From assembly GCA_021613535.1 (NCBI GenBank), contig CP075492.1, forward strand, positions 12,400,001 through 12,464,000: a DNA stretch of 64,000 nt, in the 5' to 3' direction. The DNA comes from Adineta vaga. Taxonomy: Eukaryota; Animalia; Rotifera. Within the stretch, counting starts at the first letter, position 1; every line of letters starts with the position of its first letter. The position numbers and the translations under genes were made by a program. Positions 32,535-49,700 of the stretch are shown in pieces. The notes beneath the pieces are model-generated. The model saw only the letters and a program-made list of their open reading frames with translations, did not search any database and was not told the origin of the DNA.

Positions 32535-35500
32535 ATGGGTTGCTCAAACGCCCGTTTATTAGTCCAAGCACCAATGTCTGCTGAGCCCGGTGCAACACCA
32601 AATAATACATTGCCAACACCAACATCAGCTATTTCGCCAGCTAATGTTGCAACTGATACTAATTCAAATACAACAACACGAATGCATTTGACAGGAGTTG
32701 ATCTTGTTGTGGAAAGAAATGGATCGTATACACTTTTATTAACGCCCAAAACCCATAAGCAACTAATGCCCTATGTATTACGAAAGAAACGTTTTCGGTA
32801 AGACGTATTCATATTATTGATTATTATTATAATGGTTGCATTTTTTATTTGATAAATGAATGAATGAATGAATGAATAAGAAAAAAAAGCTAAGTGAGGT
32901 ATACACTGAAACATCATATGCGTATTTGCACGCACAACGTATTGTTAGTCAATGAAATTAGTTGTTCGAGAGGAAGGAACGATTCATGTATTGATTCACA
33001 TTTATTTTAAACTCAGTTAGATGATGCGCGAGTGGATGTGTATATGTAGATACCCGAACCCACTTAAGAAGAATTACAGAATGAGTTGTATGTTCTGTGA
33101 ACTGAAATCAAATCTACAATATATGAATAGCATAACAACAGAATCACTTTCTTCTTCTGGATTAATTATATGTTGACGATGTCATCGTATGAAATCGAAT
33201 AAAAAATATTTCTTTTCTTTTTCTTCTTCTGCATGATTGCGATTGATATTCTTAGAAGTACTCAAAAACAAGCTCTACATAGAAAAATAAGATACAACGA
33301 TTGAGATTGTGCTTTCGCGTGAAGTTGTCTATTATTACTTTCTATCAATAAGGTAAAACTTTAGGTGCGATAGGCGATTACCGGTAAAATGAATACTGAT
33401 ATATATATATCGAGTGATTTGAGATTAGCCATAGTCCCCAGAGATTCACACAAAGCATATTAACCGTTCTAGTCGTGTTTGATTGATTTTTCTTGTCAAG
33501 CATTTATTTGATCAAGAAAAGAAAAGAAAAGAACGTGTTTTATTTTTGTGAAAAAATCTGAATTTTTTACCAATGATTTCATGTTTTTTAATCGTCTTTT
33601 CCATATATGTATATATATATATATATTTCTAAGAAATTTATTTATTAATTTAATCTGATATTCCCCTGATGTCAATCGACTTTTCTATCAGCATAAAACT
33701 TTTCTTTTTCTCCTCCTCTTGAAACAAGCAGATGTCGCTATCGAAATCGTCCAAGGATAATAACCACTAGAAGACTACATTTTTGAGCAAAAAAAAGCGT
33801 TGACTATTCAGAAGAAAAGATAACCTTGTCTGAACTTATTCCTTCCATTGATTGAGTACATTAATAGAAAAATGATGGTGCCAAACATCATTAATAACAA
33901 GGATCATTATATACATTTGAATTTCAATACGTTTTTCTTTCTCTCCTATTTAGAATTCTCGTTGACAAACCTCGCTCGGATCAAACATTAGTTTCTAATG
34001 AACAATTAATGGAAAATTCTAAAATAAATACAAAAAAATTAAAAACTTCAATGGAATCAACCGTTGAATCAATGGAAAAAGTTGCATCAGATGAATTAAA
34101 TAAAGTTAAAACTCGATTTATTGGTGGTCGAAGTATTGATCGTGGAAATCCTGAAGATGAAGATACAATTATTCAATCAGATGATGAAGGTATGATTGAA
34201 GAAATCGTTACAACTATTGAAGAAGATAAAGATCTTGAATGCAAAGTAAAAAAGAAAATTGAAACAAAAAAGACGATTGCCCAAGATCCTGAAACTCATC
34301 ATACAATAACAAAAGTAGTTAAAACTGAAGTGACAGAAATAACTCGAACAATAACAATTAATGATGAACATGATCTTGAACGTGCAAAACGTGAGTTAGG
34401 TATCAATGATGTCAATAGACTCTTACCATTATCATCTACATTATGGAATGATCAACCGCGTGTTATTGAAGTTAAAGAAACACATTATGAACCAAAGAAC
34501 GAAATTGTTACTTCCAAAGATTTTCCATCCGATAGTCCAATTAAACAACTTCATCCAGAAGAAAACCCAGTTCTTGCCGAATCAACTGTAGTTGGACGAG
34601 GTCCAGTTACGGAGACAATTGTTCCATTACCATCTGCATCTCCACAAAAACCAATTGAAGTAAAGAAAAAGAAAAAGAAATCCAAACTTTGTTCATGTAC
34701 TCGTGGAGTTGATGATGAGAATGAAAAGGAAACAAAAAAGAATGATAAATTGATCGTTACTCCCACTGAACAAATCAAGATAACGTCTTTGATTACAACG
34801 GCAACAACACAAGTTGTTGATAAACCATCCATTGATACACATAATCAAGGTCAACAATTAATTTCCTCGGATATAAAACAATTAATTGTTGACAAAAAAG
34901 TTCTATTAATTGAATATATTCATTCAAAAATATTCTCTCCATCAAATTTATTTACATCCATTGATGATGATAAGAAAGCAAGAAAGATTTCATCACGTAT
35001 TCTTGATCTATTACGTTACGATCGTTGTCAATCATGGGCACAAATGTCTGAACAATTAACGGAAGAATATTCAAATTATCTCTCAACTAATATATCTATT
35101 CAACCGATTGTTAACACATATTATAATTTATTAACAACAAAACAATCGAATTTACTAAATACATTTTCAACCATACACAATGAAAATGATATTAAGAACA
35201 TTCATGAAAATCATGATTATCTTAAGATTGTACAAACATATCTTAATGAACATGATCAACAATCGACACCAATGGAAACGATTGAAAAACAACAAACAAC
35301 TGATTCTCATCATGATCAACATATTGAAAAAGGTATCAGATTGATTTCTTCAAGATTTTCATTGAGCATATTTTCTTTTCATTGAAATATATAACCTCAT
35401 ACTCATCTGACGTTTGATGGATAGATGTTCGATAATAACCTTGATGCTTAGCTGACTTTTCCGTTAGCATAACATTGAAGATATATATTTAACGAGAAGA

Positions 35501-38500
35501 AGATCCTTCTAAGTATATTTCTCTTTGGTAGATAAATTAAGACAAAATATAGATAATCGGCATAAGTTTCTCATTGGATTTTTTTTTTCTACTTCTTCTT
35601 CTTCTTTATATATGTAGTTGCATCTTGAATCTATATATATGTAGTTGCATCATTCTAACTCATTGAATAGACAAGTTACAGAACTGAAATGTTATAGCGG
35701 TTATCTAATTAGTCTGGAAGATGAACGTCTCTCGTCACGTCATAAGCAATTAATACATTCCGAGGTAAACTGAGAAGCAAAGGAAGGATTCTTTTTCCTT
35801 ATTGATATGTGACGAGTATAAAGAAAAGGTCGTGTTTATTTTATTGATGTATACAACACATCTCATTTTGATGCGACCATTGGGCAAATAATAGACACAT
35901 TGATACATTCCGAGGTGAACGAGTGATTGACTAGTAGAAGAAGAAGATTTGATCTTTTTTCTTCATTCGCGTGTATATGAATAGTTCAGTATAAGATAAT
36001 ATATTTGGTAACACAATGAGATTTATGCGGTCTGTTTATCTAATATACACGAGAAACACATTTTTAATCGAATCATTAATACAATTCAGAATAAAAGAAT
36101 TGATCGTTTGTATTCAATTGCTTTTTGACATTCAACCCTATTGAATCAAACTCTTCACTCTCATTTTCTCATTGTACAAATAAAATAAATGGCTTTTTTT
36201 CTTCTTAGAAATCAATGCTGATGACGAACAAGCGACTAAACAAATCACATCAACGGATAATATGGACGAACAAAGTTTACCAATCTACAATGAAGAACAT
36301 TTAAGCAAAATGCTTGCTGATATTTCTCAACATAAACCAATTACATTAGCTGAAGCAATTGCATATGAATACATTGATCTCGAAGATCCTAAATTAGGTC
36401 TTTCGAATGAAACAATTCAACGTATTAAAAATCTTTTTCATCCATTATCAGATGAATCAACATCGAACTTGATTCGTGTTAAACGTTCAGGTGAATATTT
36501 AACTGATATTAATCTTGCTGAAATTAATCCATTCGAAAAATTAACACATACGGAACCATATGTTTATCAATTACAACAATCTTTTGAACCAACATTAGAT
36601 TTTAGTGAAAAACAATTTCGTTCATTAACAGAAGCAATATTAAATAATAAAGATCAATATGATCAATTACAATTTGATATTGCACGTACATCATTACCAG
36701 TTTATGATGCAAAAGATCTATCAATCAATGATGTTAGTCAATCCGATTCAGGTTATTCAATGACGACAGCAACACATGAAAGTTTAGCAAGTAAAATAAA
36801 AATTGAATTTGAACCAACATTAGATTTTAGTGAAAAACAATTTCGTTCATTAACAGAAGCAATATTAAATAATAAAGATCAATATGATCAATTACAATTT
36901 GATATTGCACGTACATCATTACCAGTTTATGATGCAAAAGATCTATCAATCAATGATGTTAGTCAATCCGATTCAGGTTATTCAATGACGACAGCAACAC
37001 ATGAAAGTTTAGCAAGTAAAATAAAAATTGAATTTGAACCTATTCATCAAGATATCCCGATTGTATCGAAACGTGAAGATTTTGATGAAGATGAAAAAAT
37101 TGATTTAGATAAAGCAACACAAGAACAAATTGATAAATATGAATTGAATCATGATATCATTCAAATCATAAAATCCGATTTTCACGGATCAGATAAGGTA
37201 AATTTGATTTCGTTTATTTTTTTTTCTCTATATTTGATTATCTCTTCTATAGACTGTTGGACAAGCAATTTTATCACGTGAATTACGTTTGGATAGTTCC
37301 GATCCAAGTGATATTGCATATTTACATTCATTAGGTATATATAAAGAACAAATTCAGATTTTGAATGCACTCTTTTTCCCCAAACATTCACGTATTATTG
37401 CATATTCACCAGAACCAGGCCGTTTTGTTGAAGCACAAACAACATTCAATCCAGATTATTCGGGTTATAAAACTGATACAACAATTATTCAAATTCAAGA
37501 AAAACAACTTTCGTCGGATCATTTGGCAATGCAAAGAAATATTCATGATGATCGAACATCACCCAATCTTTCTCAACAAATGACAGAATCAGAAACAGTT
37601 ATTTCATCACCAGCATTATCAACAGTATCTCCAACACAAGAAATCGCTTTAACTACAGTTCATAAAGAGAAAACGCCATCATCATCATCATTACCACCAT
37701 CACCACCCGTTGTCCAGGTCAAAAAACGAAAATCAAGTGGTGGATTATTATCATGTTTTCGAAGTAAAAAACCAAAAGCAGGAACAGAACAACAGGGTCC
37801 TAGTCCAGTAAAGCCAACCATATTGATTATTGAACCCAGTAGTCCACAAGAACCAGTAAAATCTATTGTAGAAACAACTGTTACTGATTATTCGATTACA
37901 CCTGATGGTAAACGAATTTATATTGATGCATTCCGAGATCGACCTGGAATGGATATGTCTTATAGACCAGATGATTTCGAAAGTCGATTTGTGCTACCTA
38001 TTGTAAGAATATCTCAAATTTTTTTTATCTGTTTGATTTAATTGTTCTATTCTTCTTTAGACTAAATCTCCATCTGAATACGAACGACCCATGACGCCTG
38101 AAATCGAATCCGTTGTTCATAAATCTGAAATTGTCGAAGAACATTCAGTTCCTCTTCAATCTGACATTATTGTCCATTCAGAACCAGAAATAATTAAACA
38201 AACAACTGAAATTCAATTAGAATCTCGTCCAGAAATAGTTGAACAGGAAATTGAAGTCCATGAAGAATCTCGTCCAGAAATAGTCGAACAGGAAACTGAA
38301 GTCCATGAAGAATCTCGTCCAGAAATAAATGAACAAGAAACTGAAGAAATTCATTTAGAACCTCGTCCACCTACAATTGAACCAGTTCATGTCAAACCCG
38401 AGATTGTTGAACACAAAACATCTGTTCATCATCTCGAGCCTCGTCCAGCTACAATCGAACCAGTTGATGTTCAACCGGAAAAAACACCTATTGTGATTCC

Positions 38501-41500
38501 ATCGCGAAAATCTAATCACTCAAAAACGTCGAAAAAACCTGCTATCGATTTACATGGTGCAGCTGTCCATTTACCAGCTGTTGAACTAGTTGAACCTGGA
38601 CCATTACCTACTTTGCCAATAACAAAAGGAACGAAATTAACTGGTGGTTTATGTGCATCATGTTTTGGTGCTAAAGCTGCAGAGAAAAAGAAGAAAAAAG
38701 CAACTGCAGAACCAATTCCAGTTCCTGTTGAATCAAAGAAAAGTATCGTTGAAGAAAAAAAGGATGAAGTATTACCAATTATCGAAACACCACCAGCACC
38801 AATCCTTCGAAATGATCAACCGATTTTACCTAGAGTTAATATTGATACATTTAAAGAACGTAAATTTGACAAGAGTTATGAGGTAATATAAAATAGAACT
38901 GAAACATATGATTATAAAAAGCAATCTTCCTTTCTCTTTCAGTCTCTTCCAAAATCACAAGAACGATTAGATACAACTATTGAACATCAATATCAATCAT
39001 CTTCGACAGAATTAATTCCATTATCAACATCATCGACCGCTAAAACCAATACTGTAGCAGGAACTTCATATGGATCAACAACAGCTGTCGATACATCGAT
39101 CTTTTCTCGAGTTAATATTGATACCTTCAAGGAACGAACATTTCAAAAAAGTTTTGAAGTAAATTACATTAAGCTTTACGATTAGTTCGAAAACTAATAT
39201 TTTTACTTTCATTGTAGAGTCTTCCTAAATCTCAAGAACATTTAGCGACAACATCATCTGCTGAAAAATCTTATGATCAATCACCTACTACCGAAACTGC
39301 TTTGTTACCAACAAAGATACAGACTGCAGATAATTCATTTCTACATTCAAAAGTGAATATTGACACATTCAAAGAGCGAACTTTTCAAAAAAGTTCCGAG
39401 GTAAATGAGAAAATAAAGATTGAAATGGGTTTTTTTCAATTTTCTTTGCCTGTCTTTATAGAGTTTACCTAAATCGCAAGAACGTCTGGATGCAACGAAT
39501 GAACAAATCATACTACCCTTATCTGATGAATCTCACGATCAATTACCAAGCAGTCAATCTATCCCTTCACCCCTACCATCAAAAATACAGATCACACAGG
39601 CTGAATCTTCATATTCACGAGTGAATATCGATACATTCAAAGAACGAACTTTTCAAAAGAGTTTCGAAGTATGTCTATCAAGATCATTCTTGAAATAGTT
39701 CACATTTATGTTTTCTAGAGTCTCCCCAAATCCCAAGAACGTTTGGATTCAGTACCACCATCTGAAGAACCTCGTTATCAACTAATAAATGGTGAATCTG
39801 CGTTTCCACACCCAAAGATACAGACCACCGATGACTTACCTGATTATTCCAAAGTAAATATTGATTCATTCAAAGAACGAACATTCGACAATAATTTCGA
39901 AGTGAGTTATTATAAGAAGACAAACACAACTATTCTTTATTCTGTTATTCTCTATAGAGTCGTCCAAAATCCCAAGAACATTTGAATGATAAAGCAGCAG
40001 CAAAATCGTCTCCAACTGAAGAACCTCATTATCAATTACCCATAATCCAAAATACAGACGGTGGATCTTTATATTCCAGAGTAAATATCGATACATTCAA
40101 AGAACGAACGTTTGACAAGAGTTACGAGGTTAGTAATAGGAATATATTGGTAGAACGAGTTCTTATTCTCTTATTCTTCTTTTTTATAGAGTCTCCCAAA
40201 ATCACAAGAACGGTTAAATTCAGGAACTTCATCCGAAGAACCTCATTATCAACTACCAACCAACGAATCCGTCTCTCCAGTACCAAAGGTACAATCTACA
40301 AATGACGTATCTCTATATTCCACAGTGAATATTGACACATTCAAAGAACGAACCTTTGACAAAAGCTATGAGGTTAGTGATAGGAAGATCATGATACAAT
40401 GCGTTCCTATTTCACATTCGCTTTATCTTTTAGAGTCTCCCCAAGTCACAAGAACGTTTGAATTCAGCACCTGTGTCCGCCGAACCTCATTATCAACAAC
40501 CAGTCAATGAGCCAGTGCCATTGATATCTTCGACAAAAACTACTGATTCATTCGTTAAAGATTCATCGATATATTCCAAAGTGAATATCGATACGTTCAA
40601 ACAACGAACGTTTGATAAAAGTTTTGAAGTAAAACATAACCAAAAACGAATTGATCTGATTATATTTTCATATATCATACTTTTATAGAGTCTCCCTAAA
40701 CAAGCAACAACTGAAAGAAACACTTATGATATTCCTCGTACAATTGAACTTCAACAAACAACACCATCTGTTGAAATAAAGACAGACGAACAAGTAAGAA
40801 AGAGATAATATTATAATTGATTATGTTCATTCACACACATATACAGATACATTGATCGTATCATTAATCATGTTTAACACTTGATATGAAATGAACGAGT
40901 GACAGATGAAAAGAAACATGACAAGTATTATTAGCTAGTACTTGAAAGAATAAAAGAAGAAGGAGAAGGAGAAGAAGTCGACATCAAGAATGGAATGTAA
41001 ACAATACGTCGCGAGACGATCATGATAAGAACACGCAAAAGCATCGTGAATTCAGAGTTCATTAGAAGAAAAAGAATCGAACACGTGTTTAAAGTGCGCG
41101 AAACGATCTATCTTTCTTATTGTTTCTTTCAGAAAATCAATAACGAAGGAATGTCTCCCCCGGCAATTGATATTCCAAAAACTAAGTCGAAATCCAAGAC
41201 AAAAACGAAGTCAATGACTGTTGTGAAGGAAAAGAAAATAAAAAGTTCAACAACACTTGCAAGCGATAAGAAAAAATCTGGTCTTCTTTCGACATTATTT
41301 TGTCATGGTAATCGAAAATCCAAAGTACCTGCACTTGATTTACCTCCAATAGAACGTGATTTATCACCCAATAATCAATTGCGTCAACATGATAGTGATC
41401 CATTACATGTCCCAGCAATTGAATTACCTAAACTCGATCTTCCGTTACCGGCATACAATCGTCCAGAAGTAAATATGACCAGTGGTTCAATTAAACAATC

Positions 41501-44500
41501 ATCAGAATTTGTCATTCCCGTTGTTGATTTACCATCCATCCCCGATTTACAATTACCCAAGGTTGAAAAACAAGTCATTGATGCAAATATTGATCTGATG
41601 AAAGTTCCTAATGTTCAATTGCCTGATCTTCAATATGTATTAAATGAACAAGAGAATGCTAAATTACCAGAAATTCAAATTAATAAAACAATTCAAAATG
41701 AATCTGACAAAGAAATAACAATACTAACTGGTTTAGCATTAGCTTCGCCTATTGATGATATGTTAAGCATTCAAACTGATCATAAAAGTTTTCCGATTGA
41801 AACAGATTATGCTATTCAAAATGAACCCATTGTTCCAACCATTTCAACTGAACGAACAGAAGTTATTATCAACACAGAATTCATATCAATAGAAGAAAAA
41901 TATCAAATTGTCGATACTCAACAATCTGTGCTACCAATTGTTGTTGAAGTAGGTTCAAAAATAATTAAAAAAAAAGTTATTATGCTTCTATCTTCAATTT
42001 TATTCTTATCTGTTTATTTTAGACTCAAATTACGACTACCGAATATAATTTTCAATTACCTTCACCAGAACCCATTCTTTCTGTATCGAAAGATGCTAAA
42101 TCAATTCCACCATCATTTGATGATGATGTTCCAAGTACACCTCCGAAAATTGTTCCAGCAATTCAATTTTCTCAAAAACCATTAATTGAAGCTAAGCCCG
42201 AAATCAAAAAGAATAAATCTTCAACCATGCCATTCTGTTCCTGCTTTGGTAGTAAATCAACTACACCCAAACAAACAACTCGTCCTCTCGCAGCACCAAA
42301 AGCAAGTTTACCATCAATTGATATGCCACTTCCTGCCTCAAATGTTTCTTCAACTTTAAAAACAAAAGGACCATTACGTGCACCAAGTAGTGATCTTCCA
42401 CCCGTTGATTTAACTCCAACAACTACTGAAACCGTTCGTTTACCAGGCATTCATATTCACGATAAGAAGCCTACGCCAACTCATGAAACTGAAGCAGTTG
42501 TACCAAATTTTGAAACAAAACAAGAAACAATCATTGAAAAACCAATTAAAGAAGAAATTAAAGTTAAATCGGATAATTCAACATCTGTTACAGAAAAACC
42601 ATTACAAGAAGAAATCAAAATCAAATCTTCGACTTCAACATCTGGTCATGAAAAATTGTCAACCGAACAAATTAAAGTAAGATTGAATAAATAATTTTCT
42701 TTTTCTTTCCCTCATATTTCCGTAATAAATCTACTTAACGACAACATTAGTCGAGAAAAGTGACACGACATGATATAAAAGTTGTTTTTTCTTCTTCGAC
42801 TTATTTATGTTGACAAATAAGAGATAATTTCCAGAAATGGAAAATGTCACAGATAACACCAAAAGTTTCGAGAAAAGAACATTAACCATAACAGTTCTTC
42901 GATAGAATAACGACTGTTAAGTAACATTCGCACAGTTGGATATTATCAAATATTCATTGTCGTTAATGGCTTTTTTTTTCTTCTCAAAACATAGATTATA
43001 TATATATATGTGTGTATACATATTAAATGCTTTCTTTTTCTTTTAGACTGCTTCAATTGAACCGAAAAAATCTCCATCGTTCGTTATTAAAGCTCCTGCT
43101 ATGAATATTCCTGAAATTGATTTATCTGGTCCACCTAAATCTGATGCATATCTCTCCTTATCTAAACATGAATCCGTATCAATTCCTGAACACATTCAAT
43201 CACGTTCTGACAGTGGTCTTGAAGCCATTCTTTCATCACATATGCATCCATCATCAACATTTGGTACCAATGCAACATTTGAAGATATTCAACAACATCC
43301 ATCAATCAGTTCTGGTTTAGGTAGTGAAATCTTAGATAATATTACTGCCAAAGGTTATTCTTTACCGGATATAAAAGCACCCGAACCAACACTTATACCA
43401 AAAAGCATAGAAAGTCATTCAAATATTAAACATGATTTCACTCAAAAGATTACAATGAATGATGATACACGTACTAAACTTGTCTTTCGACGTGATCAAT
43501 TAAAAACATGTTTAAGTACTGAAATATCTCAATCAATCGATGAATATGATACGAAAAAAGATCAAAAATCAGTTGATAAAATATTGACACATGCTATCGA
43601 TTTAATACAAGACAAGAAAGTAACCACATATCCGGAATTAAAGCAAAAATTAATAATCGAACATAAAAATGAAGCATTTCTAGTTGATCCAATTGTTCGT
43701 TCACTCTATTATGCTATTGAAAAACAAGGTTTAGATAATTTAGATAAACCAGAATTTCCATTAGCTATACGCGATGTAAGTCAAATGATTGATGATTTTT
43801 TATTGTTATATATTTGTTCTTTTCTTCTACCATAACAGATGGTACGTCTTCCTGCTCAACAGACATATGACACAGTGATGCATTTGAATAAAGAAGCAAT
43901 ACCATTAACTACTACAAAAATGATCAAGTAAGTGATCCTACAGATAAAGCTCGGAATGTAAAGGTAATCCGAGATAATCTTTCTAACATTGAAAAAAAGA
44001 ATGTTTGCAAGACATAGTGATTATAATTCAAATTTCATTCTAGAGATACAATAACTCCAGTTGCTGATATACCAATCGAATCGACACCAAAACCACTTGA
44101 ATCTGCACGTTCTTGTTTATCATGTGGTCGTTCTTCGAAATCGAAAAGTAAACTTTCGACATTAACATCGCCAACAACTTCATCAACTGGTTTACTTGAT
44201 GAACGTCGTCGTACACAATTAAATACACATCGTAATGATTTAGGAACTGTTCTTCGAGACCATATTCAATCTTCACAACCACCCATTCGAAAATTTGCTG
44301 ATCATCCTAAAGAATCAGAAAAAATCATTCGAAAAAGTTTAACACTTTTAACACAACCAAAAATTCATTCCTACGAACAAATTCGTCATGATTTAAAATT
44401 AGAACATAAACAAAGTTTCTATTTAGTTGATCCAATTGTTGATATTATTCGTGATACATTAGATCATTGTGATATCACACAAATGAATGAAAAAACGAAT

Positions 44501-46185
44501 TTAGACATCTTAGATTCGAATATATCTCAAACAGCCAAATTATATAATAATCAATTGAATATCTTATCAACAGAAGAAGCGCATGCTTTTAAATCGGATC
44601 AATTAACCTGGTTACAACAATATCTTATAACAAATGAATCAAAAGAAAAGAAATTAACGAAAAAACAAAATAAAGAATTGAATAAAATCCTTCATCGTAA
44701 CATTGAAATTCTTTCATTTAATCTTTTGTCAACATGGGATGAATTAGCTTTACAATTACAACGTGAATATCCTAAGGCACATGATCTATGTGATCGTTCA
44801 GTTGAAATTATGAAACAAGCACAAAAAGATGGATTATTTTTCTTACAACATGCTCCAGTTCAAGATAAACGACGTCCATCATCATTAATAACTGAACGTG
44901 CTCGAGAAAATTTGAAAAGTAATCGAAAAAAAATTATTAATTCATTGAAAACATTCTTTACTACAAATAATTCACCATCACCTAACGAAAGTCAATTAGA
45001 CACATATCTTCATAAGACATTTCATTATCTACAAGAACAAAAGCAAGGTCAATTTAAAAGCTATCAAGATTTAAAAGAACAATTAAAGAAAGATTTTCAT
45101 AAAAATCATCAAGATCAATTAATTGAACAAATTGTTGATGTTATCGAACAAGCACATGCAACAAATCAATTTGATGATATCGATAAACCAGAATTACAAA
45201 CTCTTATGAAAGATCGATTAGATGGCAAACGTACGTTATCCTTTTACTTTTCTTTATTTCAACTTCTTTTTTCTTCTTATTTAGCATTAGTTATTAAAGA
45301 AATGTATGTTTCATTACCATCACGTGCAGGTGCATATGGAATATCGAAATATTCTATGGAAGAATCGACACGTTATCTGTCGACATCGGCAAGTGGTGAT
45401 CAAACATTGAATAGTACAACAATATCACATCGAGTTGCTCGTGGTCTTAGTTGGAGAGAGGCAAATGAACGAGCAAGAATTTTATTTTATCGAGGAAAAC
45501 ATCCTGCTATCCATTATGATGAACAAGCAGCAGCATTTGATGTTCGAATGTTATTAGAAACTGCATCAGGTGGTACACGTGAAATACCTGTAACGGACAG
45601 TGATGTAAGTAAAAATAGAAAGTTTTTCAAATAGTTATCGAATTCTAATTATGTATAATTACATTTGTGACAGACACCTGCATATGTAATTAGTCAATCA
45701 AGTCATTTACTAAGAGAATTTTCATTCCTATTGACCTTGTATGCAGGGCTACAGCTGGTAAAAGATAACAAGATGATAGACTTATCCTTGCATACTTTTC
45801 TATATTACAAAATTGCTTTTGGGTAATATAATCTCCCACTACTGTCACCTTTTATTGCCGGAAACGATGAGTGTTATCTATGCGTAAAAATTTATTCAAT
45901 AAGATATATTTCTTGACAATTTGAAAATTTTCTTTCTTTCTTTCTAAGATTCATGAATTACTCAACTCGTGTGGTGTTCAATGGGATGGTGTTAATATCA
46001 TATCATTAGTTGATCATAGTGAAGATGTTGTACGTGCTGCTGAACAAGCAGCATTAAAAGTTATTCGAGAAAAAGGTATCGTCGATTTACGGACACCACC
46101 ATCAACACGAAATGTCGATACAGATGATAAGGATAAAAATCTTACGGAAACAATTATTTCGTCTACTACAAGTCCATCTTCATGA
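32535..46185 (+). CDS. Uncharacterised giant membrane-associated scaffold-like protein (about 3225 aa, 20 exons): 32535-32797, 33954-35332, 36209-37197, 37253-38002, 38061-38882, 38943-39158, 39218-39400, 39462-39668, 39719-39901, 39958-40128, 40190-40372, 40434-40628, 40689-40793, 41133-41948, 42023-42676, 43047-43775, 43839-43927, 44044-45230, 45285-45604, 45949-46185
   Basis: Every junction is GT-AG and phase-compatible, giving one open frame from MGCSNAR to a TGA at 46183-46185. Mostly low-complexity E/K/P/S/T sequence with several internal repeat types. No known family recognised. Confidence 0.82.
36583..37040 (+). repeat. Exact 225-bp (75-codon) tandem duplication within an exon
   Basis: 36583-36807 and 36808-37032 appear identical; tttgaacc is present at all three boundaries (36583, 36808, 37033). 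Confidence 0.95.
38220..38354 (+). repeat. 45-bp coding tandem repeat, about 3 copies (ESRPEIVEQExEVHE)
   Basis: gaatctcgtccagaaata starts at 38220, 38265 and 38310. Confidence 0.9.
38832..40700 (+). repeat. Array of tandemly duplicated phase-0 exons with conserved ends
   Basis: Seven exons of 216, 183, 207, 183, 171, 183 and 195 nt. Each begins S(L/R)P(K/Q)SQE(R/H)L and ends VNID(T/S)FK(E/Q)RTF(D/Q)xx(Y/F/S)E. They are separated by 50-61 nt introns. Confidence 0.92.
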
Positions 46186-46767: not shown

Positions 46768-49700
46768 TCACGACGATTCTGATAGATGAGTAGTAATTGA
46801 AGATGAATCAGTAATTTCATTCGCTGATGTACTTGTACTCATCGCTGTTGAAGATGCTTGTTGTTCCTGTTGCTGCTGTTGTTGCTCGTCAGCAAGTTCT
46901 TGCCATCTATGAAGGTTGTCTCTGAAAATGAAATAAGATAATTGAGATTGAAAATGATCTCAATGAAAATGTACCGAGCTCCATTTAACATTGGCATTGT
47001 TTCAGGAACGATTCGTACGATTAATGAATAGCACGGTAAACAAATATTATTTATAAAATTCACCTAAAGAGAAGTAGAAGATGCATATATAATAATGATA
47101 AACATAAGAGACTTAGTTTGATCTGTATTCTCTAAACCTAAAACAATTTCATAAGATATTCGTAAAGATAATCTTCACATTTTTGGATATTATCTCGCAC
47201 GAAAGACAATTTTTATCGATTTAGTATTTAGTGAAGTGTGCTACAAAACATCCTGTTGAATATATCGACTCATCATTGACGCACTATTTCCTATTCGAAG
47301 ATTCTTACTTGGTTTTTTGGCAATTCATGTGCCAAAGATCGATCCATTAGCGATTGTGGTTGAATGCCTCGTCGTTTTTCTTCATCACCCTGTAGAAATA
47401 AATTTCATTCTTTTAAAACAATATAATCCTAAAATTTTCTCTCTCGTTCGCTTGCTATATATTCTTTATTAATTTTCATAGGAAACTAATCAGAAGAAAG
47501 CACACCTCTTGCCAAAACTCTGCCATGATTGTATTCACAATATGTTCTTGTACTGACCATGGTTTATACATCGCACATAAATCAACTGCTGTCATCGATA
47601 CTGATTGTAAACATTGACTGGAATAAAAATATTTCATTCAATTTTGACCTGCTATGTTGTTTTATGATTAGTAATGATTAGTGTAGAAAAAGAGAGACAG
47701 TGAGCAAGTGAACGAGAGAAAACGAGATATATCGAAGACATAAAATCACCTGTTGAAAGAATTCTTCCATGATGATGCTCACATTTGACCGCTGTACGGC
47801 CCAATGTTTAAATGACGAGCATAAATCAGCTGCGGTCATACTGAGCCCCATCACGAGCAGTCTAGAGATCAAAAAATAGAGCAATCAAGAAGAATATGTC
47901 AATAATCACAAAGATAACAAACAACACAATATGTGCAATAGATAATAGAAATAACAAAAACAAAGCAGATAATCAAATAAGAAGATAATTAAACTTACAA
48001 ATGTTCTCGATTATGCCAATCAAATTGATTATTTTCTACGATTTTTTCAAGTTTCGGACGATTTTCAAAAAATAATGCTAAATCTGTTGCTAATATACAA
48101 TGACGAATTTCATCTAACATTTGTCGATATTCTTTTGGAGAAAAATGCTTGAAAATATTCAAATTTTCCGTCTGAATACAAAGATGAGGATTTTTCGAAA
48201 AACAAAAGCAATTCATCAATAATAGTTTTACTTGTAAAATGGTAACTGTTTGATTGAAATGATGTCGTTCCATTGTGGAAGTCGAATAAATTGAAGCAAG
48301 TGTTGATGAACTTTTAACCATATATGCATTTGTTTTACCACGATGATCAAGATCATGACAAAGGCAAGCAACAAACAAAGCAATACACTAATTGAATACA
48401 ATCAAAATGAAAATTCATCGAAAAGAAAAAAAAACTATAACAAGAACAAACTTCATTCGGTGAATAGTGATGTTTTGTTCTTTTTATCACAGTGTAAATT
48501 GCATGGGCAACACTGAATGCATGTGACCAATTATGATAAGGAACATTACGATAATTCTTTCGTACAGTTAATACAAATCTCATTAGACATTCTCGATCGA
48601 ATCTAAGAATAGAAATTCGTAGTTGAAAAAGTAAAACAGAAAAGAAAAACACGAGGATTTACCTATTCACATTTGCTGGATCCAAATTGGTCAAATCAAG
48701 AAGCATGTAGAGAACATAAATTGGTTTCATATCATTTGTAACACTCCAAGGAGAAAATTCAAATAATTCAATATCGGGTATACTATTTGGAATAATGCTT
48801 GTTTTGAAACGTTCATATTCTTCATCTGAACATGATGCATGATATGATAAAACTTCCAGTGCAACTTTACATTTTTGTTCAGATCGACGAATACGATCAT
48901 AAAGTGAAGCATGATGTAAAGCTAAAATGATGAGAACACCAATGAAAACTAATAACTATTTGCAGAGTAACTATTAGAAAGAAACATTTTCTTAATAAGG
49001 TTTATGTTTATATATAGTTTTCTCATTAAAATATTATTATCTATTATGTTGACAGACTATTTTTAGAACTACCAAACACTCTTTTTCTTTTTAATTAGGT
49101 AAAATATAAATCCTAATGATATGATAGAACGATATAAGGTCAATTCTATGTCTACATTCAATTTTCGAATCGATTTATAACTAGACCCACTATGCAAAGA
49201 TAAATAATCGAAATTGACTTCCTATTGACTTTTATGTTTAAGAATAAGCAATAACTAATTCAAATAGTAATTTTACATTTTAATAATGTACATAAAAGAC
49301 AAGCAAATAGATGTGTATGCTTACATAACCTTAGGCATTTAAGATTTAAAATGATTTCTTTCTTACCAAGTCCACAATAGACAGCAAATGTTTCAAATGA
49401 TTCTTCATCACCTTTTGTAAAATGTCCATTCTTTTTATTAACCATTTGTACAACACCAATAACATTTCCTTGAATCATAATTGGCATACATAAAAGTGTT
49501 TTCGTCTTATAACCTGTTTTCTGATCAATATCTCTAGATAAGAAATTTTCATAAGTCTTTCTTTTCCTCATCGATCAAACATCTCATCTTACCGATTAAA
49601 TCGATCATCACTATATGCATCAATAATATTCAATGTTTTTCCTGTCGTCGCCACATAACCGGCAATACCTTTATCCATTGGAAAACGTATACAATCACGA

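Follow-up and report, generated by a model that had tools for sequence, protein, structure and literature searches.

An exon array that joins a linear motif across each splice junction in a gene of the rotifer Adineta vaga

When one short motif recurs along a protein and every copy is divided between two exons, it may be asked how the arrangement arose, and whether the number of copies is set during splicing or in the genome itself. Both questions are raised by a locus in the window, the whole stretch of 64,000 nucleotides of Adineta vaga DNA analysed here (G+C ~30%), where translation of 37700-41250 reveals a repeated peptide in shifting frames. A sequence-only reading of the window had described a modular exon array and proposed that it serves as a splice-tunable array of binding sites. 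The anatomy, the transcripts, the relatives in other genomes and the possible function of this array are considered in turn below.

The exon array and its host gene

The array comprises seven exons which, like the flanking exons and motifs described with them, lie on the forward strand. The first four, at 38943-39158 (216 nt, 72 aa), 39218-39400 (183 nt, 61 aa), 39462-39668 (207 nt, 69 aa) and 39719-39901 (183 nt, 61 aa), are each backed by parsing, by contig joints and by a profile match in the genome; exons 5, 6 and 7 follow at 39958-40128 (171 nt, 57 aa), 40190-40372 (183 nt, 61 aa) and 40434-40628 (195 nt, 65 aa). By exact parsing, all seven lengths are multiples of 3 and all seven exons are in phase 0, and the eight flanking introns (60, 59, 61, 50, 56, 61, 61 and 60 nt) have GT..AG ends without exception. 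The 5' end of each array exon encodes S(L/R)PKSQE(R/H)L and the 3' end VNID(T/S)FK(E/Q)RTF..(F/Y/S)E (7/7), the two motif halves are joined at 8/8 exon junctions, and 19 columns are invariant in the alignment of the seven exons. The first half-motif, VNIDTFKERKFDKSYE (38835-38882), forms the 3' end of an upstream exon (38061-38882, with joints 38002 to 38061 and 38882 to 38943), and parsing and contig joints place the intron within motif copy 1 at 38883-38942 (60 nt, GT..AG). The same two kinds of evidence define the exon after the array (40689-40793), which starts with SLPKQATT, a truncated eighth copy, and is followed by an intron of 339 nt ending at 41132. The earlier description of seven symmetric phase-0 exons with conserved ends, and of a motif occurring eight times, always across an intron and with its last copy reduced to SLPK, is thus confirmed.

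The exon middles had been described as variable and rich in S/T/P. They are both, but not simply variable, since a further conserved site, EEPHYQLP, lies within them; exons 5-7 have it intact and exons 1-4 in weaker form. It reads EEPHYQLP in exon 5 (Tyr codon at 40030) and exon 6 (Tyr codon at 40247) and AEPHYQQP in exon 7 (Tyr codon at 40491), and the exon at 40689-40793 contains NTYDIPRT (Tyr codon at 40725). EEPHYQ(L/S)P and the TYD(I/V/T)PR that follows it are YxxP sites, of which there are four in or beside the array (three of the EEPHYQxP type and one YDIP). A single related motif, IYIDAFRDR, conforming to [IV]-x-I-D-x-F-[KR]-[DE]-R, lies at 37916-37942, exactly where the sequence-only reading had placed it, and is kept in both ohnologs, in Rotaria and in Didymodactylos. 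When a profile of the seven exons was run against the A. vaga genome, each exon was matched at E 1e-22 to 1e-31, and the motif proved to be confined to the array gene and its ohnolog. The motif array is far beyond chance.

The host gene encodes the hypothetical protein I4U23_014746 (P0050, 3075 aa), retrieved by a database search with a relative as query and mapped by exact matches to 32535-46182 on the forward strand; the match covers all seven array exons. Its N-terminus is MGCSNARLLVQA, with MGCSNA at 32535, and the start MGCSNARLLVQ is kept in both ohnologs and across species. A Gly at position 2, a Cys at 3 and a small residue at 6 are the pattern of N-myristoylation combined with palmitoylation, and by its sequence the MGCSNARLLVQA start looks like such a site. 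Four internal sites combine Cys with basic residues: GLLSCFRSKKPK (37740-37775), GGLCASCFGAKAAEKKKK (38645-38700, in the exon just upstream of the array), GLLSTLFCHGNRKSK (about 41390) and MPFCSCFGSKS (42227-42260). Most of them are kept in Rotaria and A. steineri, and their role may lie in palmitoylation or membrane binding. The C-terminal domain of ~115 residues (GLSWREANERARILFYRG...WDG.N.ISL...; window 45287-46182, residues 2940-3040 of P0050) has 51 invariant columns across bdelloids and Pomphorhynchus. Its AlphaFold2 model, built on 13 aligned sequences, is poor (pLDDT 49), and it has no meaningful match among PDB sequences by profile and none in Pfam; an ESM Atlas feature search with the C-terminal exon likewise gave no usable match.

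Relatives were found by database search in Adineta ricciae, A. steineri, five Rotaria species and Didymodactylos carnosus, as well as in the acanthocephalan Pomphorhynchus laevis (28% identity), while the same search returned none outside Syndermata. On these matches the protein family appears to be known only from bdelloid rotifers and one acanthocephalan. Pfam offers no family for the full I4U23_014746 (E up to 0.1), for P0066 or for P0067, and nothing above threshold for the large exons neighbouring the array.

Several other repeats are found in the gene. Within one exon, at 36583-37040, lies an in-frame tandem duplication of 225 nt whose copies are 100% identical. The GenBank protein P0050 has one copy, its match jumping from 36816 to 37042, and the duplication is either a very recent event or an artefact of assembly or annotation. 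In-frame tandem repeats also occur at 38184-38346, in the exon upstream of the array (45 nt x3.6; SRPEIVEQE(T/I)EVHEE), and at 42535-42655 (57 nt x2.1). Repeats of the type 'D-L-x-G / L-P-x-V-E-L-P' are seen at 38550-38620 (DLHGAAVHLPAVELVEPGPLP) and 41400-41800, and IDIKGPAVDIKPP-type repeats at residues ~790-900 of the Didymodactylos relative P0066. Downstream of the array gene, at ~47500-48400 on the minus strand, lies a phosphodiesterase gene (GAF plus PDEase domains), which also adjoins the array gene in Rotaria magnacalcarata, so that gene order is conserved.

Splicing of the array

Contigs of four public runs from three studies (X1, X3, X5 and X6) were placed on 37200-42700. The runs are presumed to be RNA, and contigs lacking introns are hard to explain as other than spliced transcripts. 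Such contigs come from three runs (X1, X3 and X5) in two studies, with introns absent at the predicted GT..AG ends in 8/8 cases in X1 and X3 and in 6/8 in X5. One of them, record 3 of X1 (3158 nt), extends from 38609 to 42644 and holds all seven array exons in order. The repeats have no 31-mer in common, and the intron-less contigs are therefore not repeat chimeras. X1 stems from a diverged haplotype or strain: it differs at many single bases and has 3 nt inserted in frame after 40014, and its exon number equals that of the window. In these contigs the array is constitutively spliced, the dominant isoform including all seven exons. The contigs also bear on the annotation: the GenBank model has a junction from 40609 to 40691, at the cost of FDKSFES in the last motif, whereas the intron-less contigs of all three runs join 40628 to 40689, and the GenBank junction is probably wrong.

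Regulated skipping of cassette exons, yielding a large set of isoforms with different motif numbers and spacer lengths, was the function first proposed for the array. Its arithmetic is correct: with every exon in phase 0 and of a length divisible by 3, skipping any subset of exons keeps the frame and rebuilds the motif. The contigs of all four runs join neighbouring exons only, with no exon-skipping joint among them, although assembled contigs lose rare variants and show the dominant isoform, so that rare or condition-specific skipping would be missed and rare isoforms could escape. Splice-tunable isoforms thus go unsupported, the intron-less contigs of three runs containing consecutive joints only and one of them all seven exons. 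Moreover, the introns measure only 50-61 nt. Introns as short as these are recognised by intron definition, a mode of splicing in which exons are not often skipped. Regulated skipping is further disfavoured by the comparison of genomes described below, in which every exon is matched by a separate A. ricciae ortholog and copy number is seen to vary genomically instead. On balance, it is quite unlikely.

Duplication, selection and copy number

The ohnolog I4U23_028083 (P0051, 2663 aa; contig 6, 2643000-2652999, minus strand) has the same exon layout as the array gene but one motif only, and none of the array exons. An intron interrupts this motif at the corresponding position (...SVNIDTYQERTFQKSSE, intron, NLPQLEDRLNATIEKIVPTEEPHYQLP...DTYDVPRS), which indicates that the intron inside the motif is older than the array. 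In Rotaria, the intron position is identical in every motif copy, and introns 5 and 6 of the window can still be aligned to each other. The single ancestral motif, VNID..F.ERTF.KS.E followed by.LPK..E.L, was thus already split by a phase-0 intron, and tandem duplications of ~180-290 bp, whose breakpoints lay in the exonic spacers, copied the motif together with its intron. Each new exon therefore consists of a second motif half, a spacer and a first motif half, and is symmetric by construction. A duplication origin of the array is demonstrated at the level of sequence comparison, with neighbouring exons that are homologous, a single phase and introns that were duplicated along with the exons. 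The symmetry of the exons and the rebuilding of the motif at each junction follow from this history of duplication and do not show that the array was designed for splicing. Rotaria also has copies of the other ohnolog; their VNID core is decayed (VEIDK...), while LPKLEDRL, EEPHYQLP and TYDTPR persist.

The copies have diverged considerably. Duplication units (an array exon plus the following intron) share 55-68% DNA identity with one another. The seven A. vaga units pair 1:1 with orthologs in A. ricciae, at 61-79% identity on the diagonal and 38-62% off it, and ortholog pairs are 81% identical in the motif parts and 55% in the spacers. That each exon has an A. ricciae ortholog of its own suggests that each is kept for itself. 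Over the 27 motif codons of the seven A. vaga copies, pS is 0.65 and pN 0.09, and dN/dS is 0.06 with synonymous sites saturated (dS about 1.5); the motif is under strong purifying selection. Judged from these alignments, the array is old and every copy is maintained by selection.

Motif number was compared between genomes for the orthologs of the array-bearing lineage only. A. vaga and A. ricciae have 8 copies each, and A. steineri has at least 9, in a model that is cut at its N end and includes a duplicated block. Within Rotaria, there are 6 in sp. Silwood1, 6 in sp. Silwood2, 6 in R. sordida, 7 in R. socialis, and 6 and 8 in two assemblies of R. magnacalcarata. At the DNA level, one of these assemblies has two units of 262-263 bp more than the other. 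Both loci are free of N and are followed by the same phosphodiesterase gene; the difference of 6 versus 8 could be an assembly collapse. In Rotaria sp. Silwood2, units 1-3 are 79-92% identical to each other and, by this similarity, were duplicated recently or homogenised. As the exon counts read, motif number changes in the genome rather than via splicing, the species ranging from 6 copies to at least 9.

The motif, its proposed function and known systems

The searches for related motifs used single exons of the window, and spliced sequence was taken from database proteins only (e.g. P0001, P0036 and P0050). Against 1.84 billion representative proteins, the seven-exon profile gave 26 matches, the named one being from Rotaria. 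Most of the others carry this motif pair in short ORFs from metagenome or Logan contigs, and the most divergent, P0022 and P0009, are also encoded on short contigs of these two kinds. No Pfam family was found for any array exon (E up to 10), the array profile had nothing meaningful among PDB sequences, and an ESM Atlas feature search with the array returned no usable match and no cluster with the motif. No paper was found to contain the motif strings or the locus tag, and a literature search on exon duplication in bdelloids yielded a general review only. The motif, initially reported as unrecognised, therefore stays so in Pfam, PDB sequences, the Atlas and the literature. Several short motifs were compared by eye: PP1 RVxF, calcineurin PxIxIT, the clathrin box, AP2 FxDxF/DPF and PTB NPxY do not fit the VNID core, and for the LIR motif there is only a loose D-S-S-x-[FY]-x-x-V pattern, of a kind common by chance.

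The AlphaFold2 model of two units (23 aligned rows) has a pLDDT of 61 and a pTM of 0.18; the D-x-F-K of each motif forms a one-turn helix, and these two helices are its only secondary structure. The array region is read from this model as a disordered stretch of short linear motifs, with no confident fold. The aromatic residues flanking the VNID core alternate between Y and F across species, which points to hydrophobic contacts and not to phosphorylation sites. The idea of a multivalent binding array is plausible and the predicted disorder fits it; it is the splice tuning attached to it that lacks support.

Taken together, the locus is probably a constitutive tandem-exon array in a rotifer-specific gene for a lipid-anchored scaffold, with motif number set genomically; its binding function is much less certain than its anatomy. 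The gene most likely encodes a membrane-tethered scaffold anchored by lipid groups, and a cytoplasmic location of this scaffold is suggested by the MGC start and the four Cys-plus-basic sites. A disordered stretch of ~450 residues would present eight copies of a linear motif of ~25-30 residues, and the VNID-SLPK motifs would recruit several copies of a putative cytoplasmic partner. Judging by sequence patterns, the YxxP tyrosines, once phosphorylated, would possibly recruit SH2 adaptors. The number of binding motifs would be set by genomic gain or loss of exon units rather than by splicing. A more specific version is doubtful as it stands: VNIDTFKERTF-x5-SLPKSQERL would be a new bdelloid-specific linear motif on a giant, doubly lipid-anchored Syndermata scaffold, nucleating together with the YxxP sites a membrane-proximal assembly, for which the intracytoplasmic lamina, the defining feature of Syndermata, is a candidate, with site number tuned by rapid genomic gain and loss of exons and perhaps by rare, condition-specific skipping.

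Two other functions were weighed against the lipid-anchored scaffold. In the first, the array would be a structural or elastic element, whose aromatic motifs pair within or between molecules to form a lamina or gel while the S/T/P-rich spacers act as entropic springs. The conserved aromatic and aliphatic motif positions (V, I, F, F, F/Y, L), the composition of the spacers, the very large size of a protein apparently restricted to Syndermata and the AHNAK-like IDIKGP repeats in the Didymodactylos relative are all consistent with such a role. However, the AlphaFold2 model contains no packing between units, and the conserved charged positions (K, E, R, D) and the YxxP sites fit partner recognition better, which makes a structural element unlikely. 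In the second, the region would mainly be a multi-tyrosine substrate like that of BCAR1/p130Cas, with functional YxxP sites and the VNID motif as an accessory. SH2 binding of YxxP and YDVP-R has support in the literature: the consensus for the SH2 domains of Crk/CrkL is YxxP, and binding to a Crk SH2 domain is described for pYDVP-RS peptides (PMC5043372). EEPHYQ(L/S)P is kept in >20 relatives, and together with TYD(V/T)PR it survives in those Rotaria copies of the other ohnolog whose VNID core has decayed. Against this, YxxP is intact in only 3/7 A. vaga array exons whereas the VNID cores are nearly invariant (8/8), and Pfam finds no SH3 or FAT-like domain. A region serving mainly as a tyrosine substrate is highly improbable.

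The locus is a clean worked example of how a linear motif with an intron inside it can turn into an exon array that is neutral to the reading frame. The ohnolog, in the same genome, still preserves the starting state with one copy, while in related species the copy number goes on changing. An unannotated motif under strong selection is also a possible handle for finding a binding partner. General principles are unchanged, since arrays of symmetric duplicated exons are already familiar and the contigs gave no sign of regulated splicing.

The BCAR1/p130Cas substrate domain is likewise disordered, with repeated (E/D)-x-x-Y-(Q/D)-x-P, and the rotifer YDIP-RT resembles the YDVP-RS peptides that bind a Crk SH2 domain (PMC5043372). 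It differs in that the dominant conserved element in the rotifer protein is VNIDTFKERTF...SLPKSQERL. Membership of the BCAR1/p130Cas family was rejected, as there are only four YxxP sites and no SH3 or other Pfam domain in 3075 aa. In style only, the protein also recalls AHNAK and periaxin, giant repetitive membrane-associated scaffolds. Like them, it is very large and mostly disordered, with short 'x-D-L-x-G-P / L-P-x-V-E-L-P' repeats, and probably associates with a membrane, but no PDZ domain was found in the rotifer protein and the VNID array is without counterpart in them.

Known repeats of muscle and microtubule proteins were rejected on sequence. The consensus lacks the SDxxYK of the nebulin repeat (~35 residues), the array exons lack the PGGG of the tau/MAP tubulin-binding repeat (31-32 residues), and the consensus is rich in S/T/E/K with an aromatic core, unlike the P/E/V/K-rich titin PEVK/PPAK repeat (~28 residues); none of the three gave a Pfam match. 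In genomic organisation, nebulin, titin PEVK and the 54-bp exons of fibrillar collagen likewise consist of homologous, tandemly duplicated exons of the same phase that keep the frame at any number, and their repeat number also differs between lineages, although they have no sequence relation to the rotifer array (no nebulin, PPAK or other Pfam match). Titin PEVK and nebulin exons are differentially spliced, whereas the rotifer array has introns of 50-61 nt and no alternative splicing is seen in the contigs. Set beside these systems, the locus is a new lineage-restricted motif within a familiar genomic architecture, the symmetric duplicated exon array.
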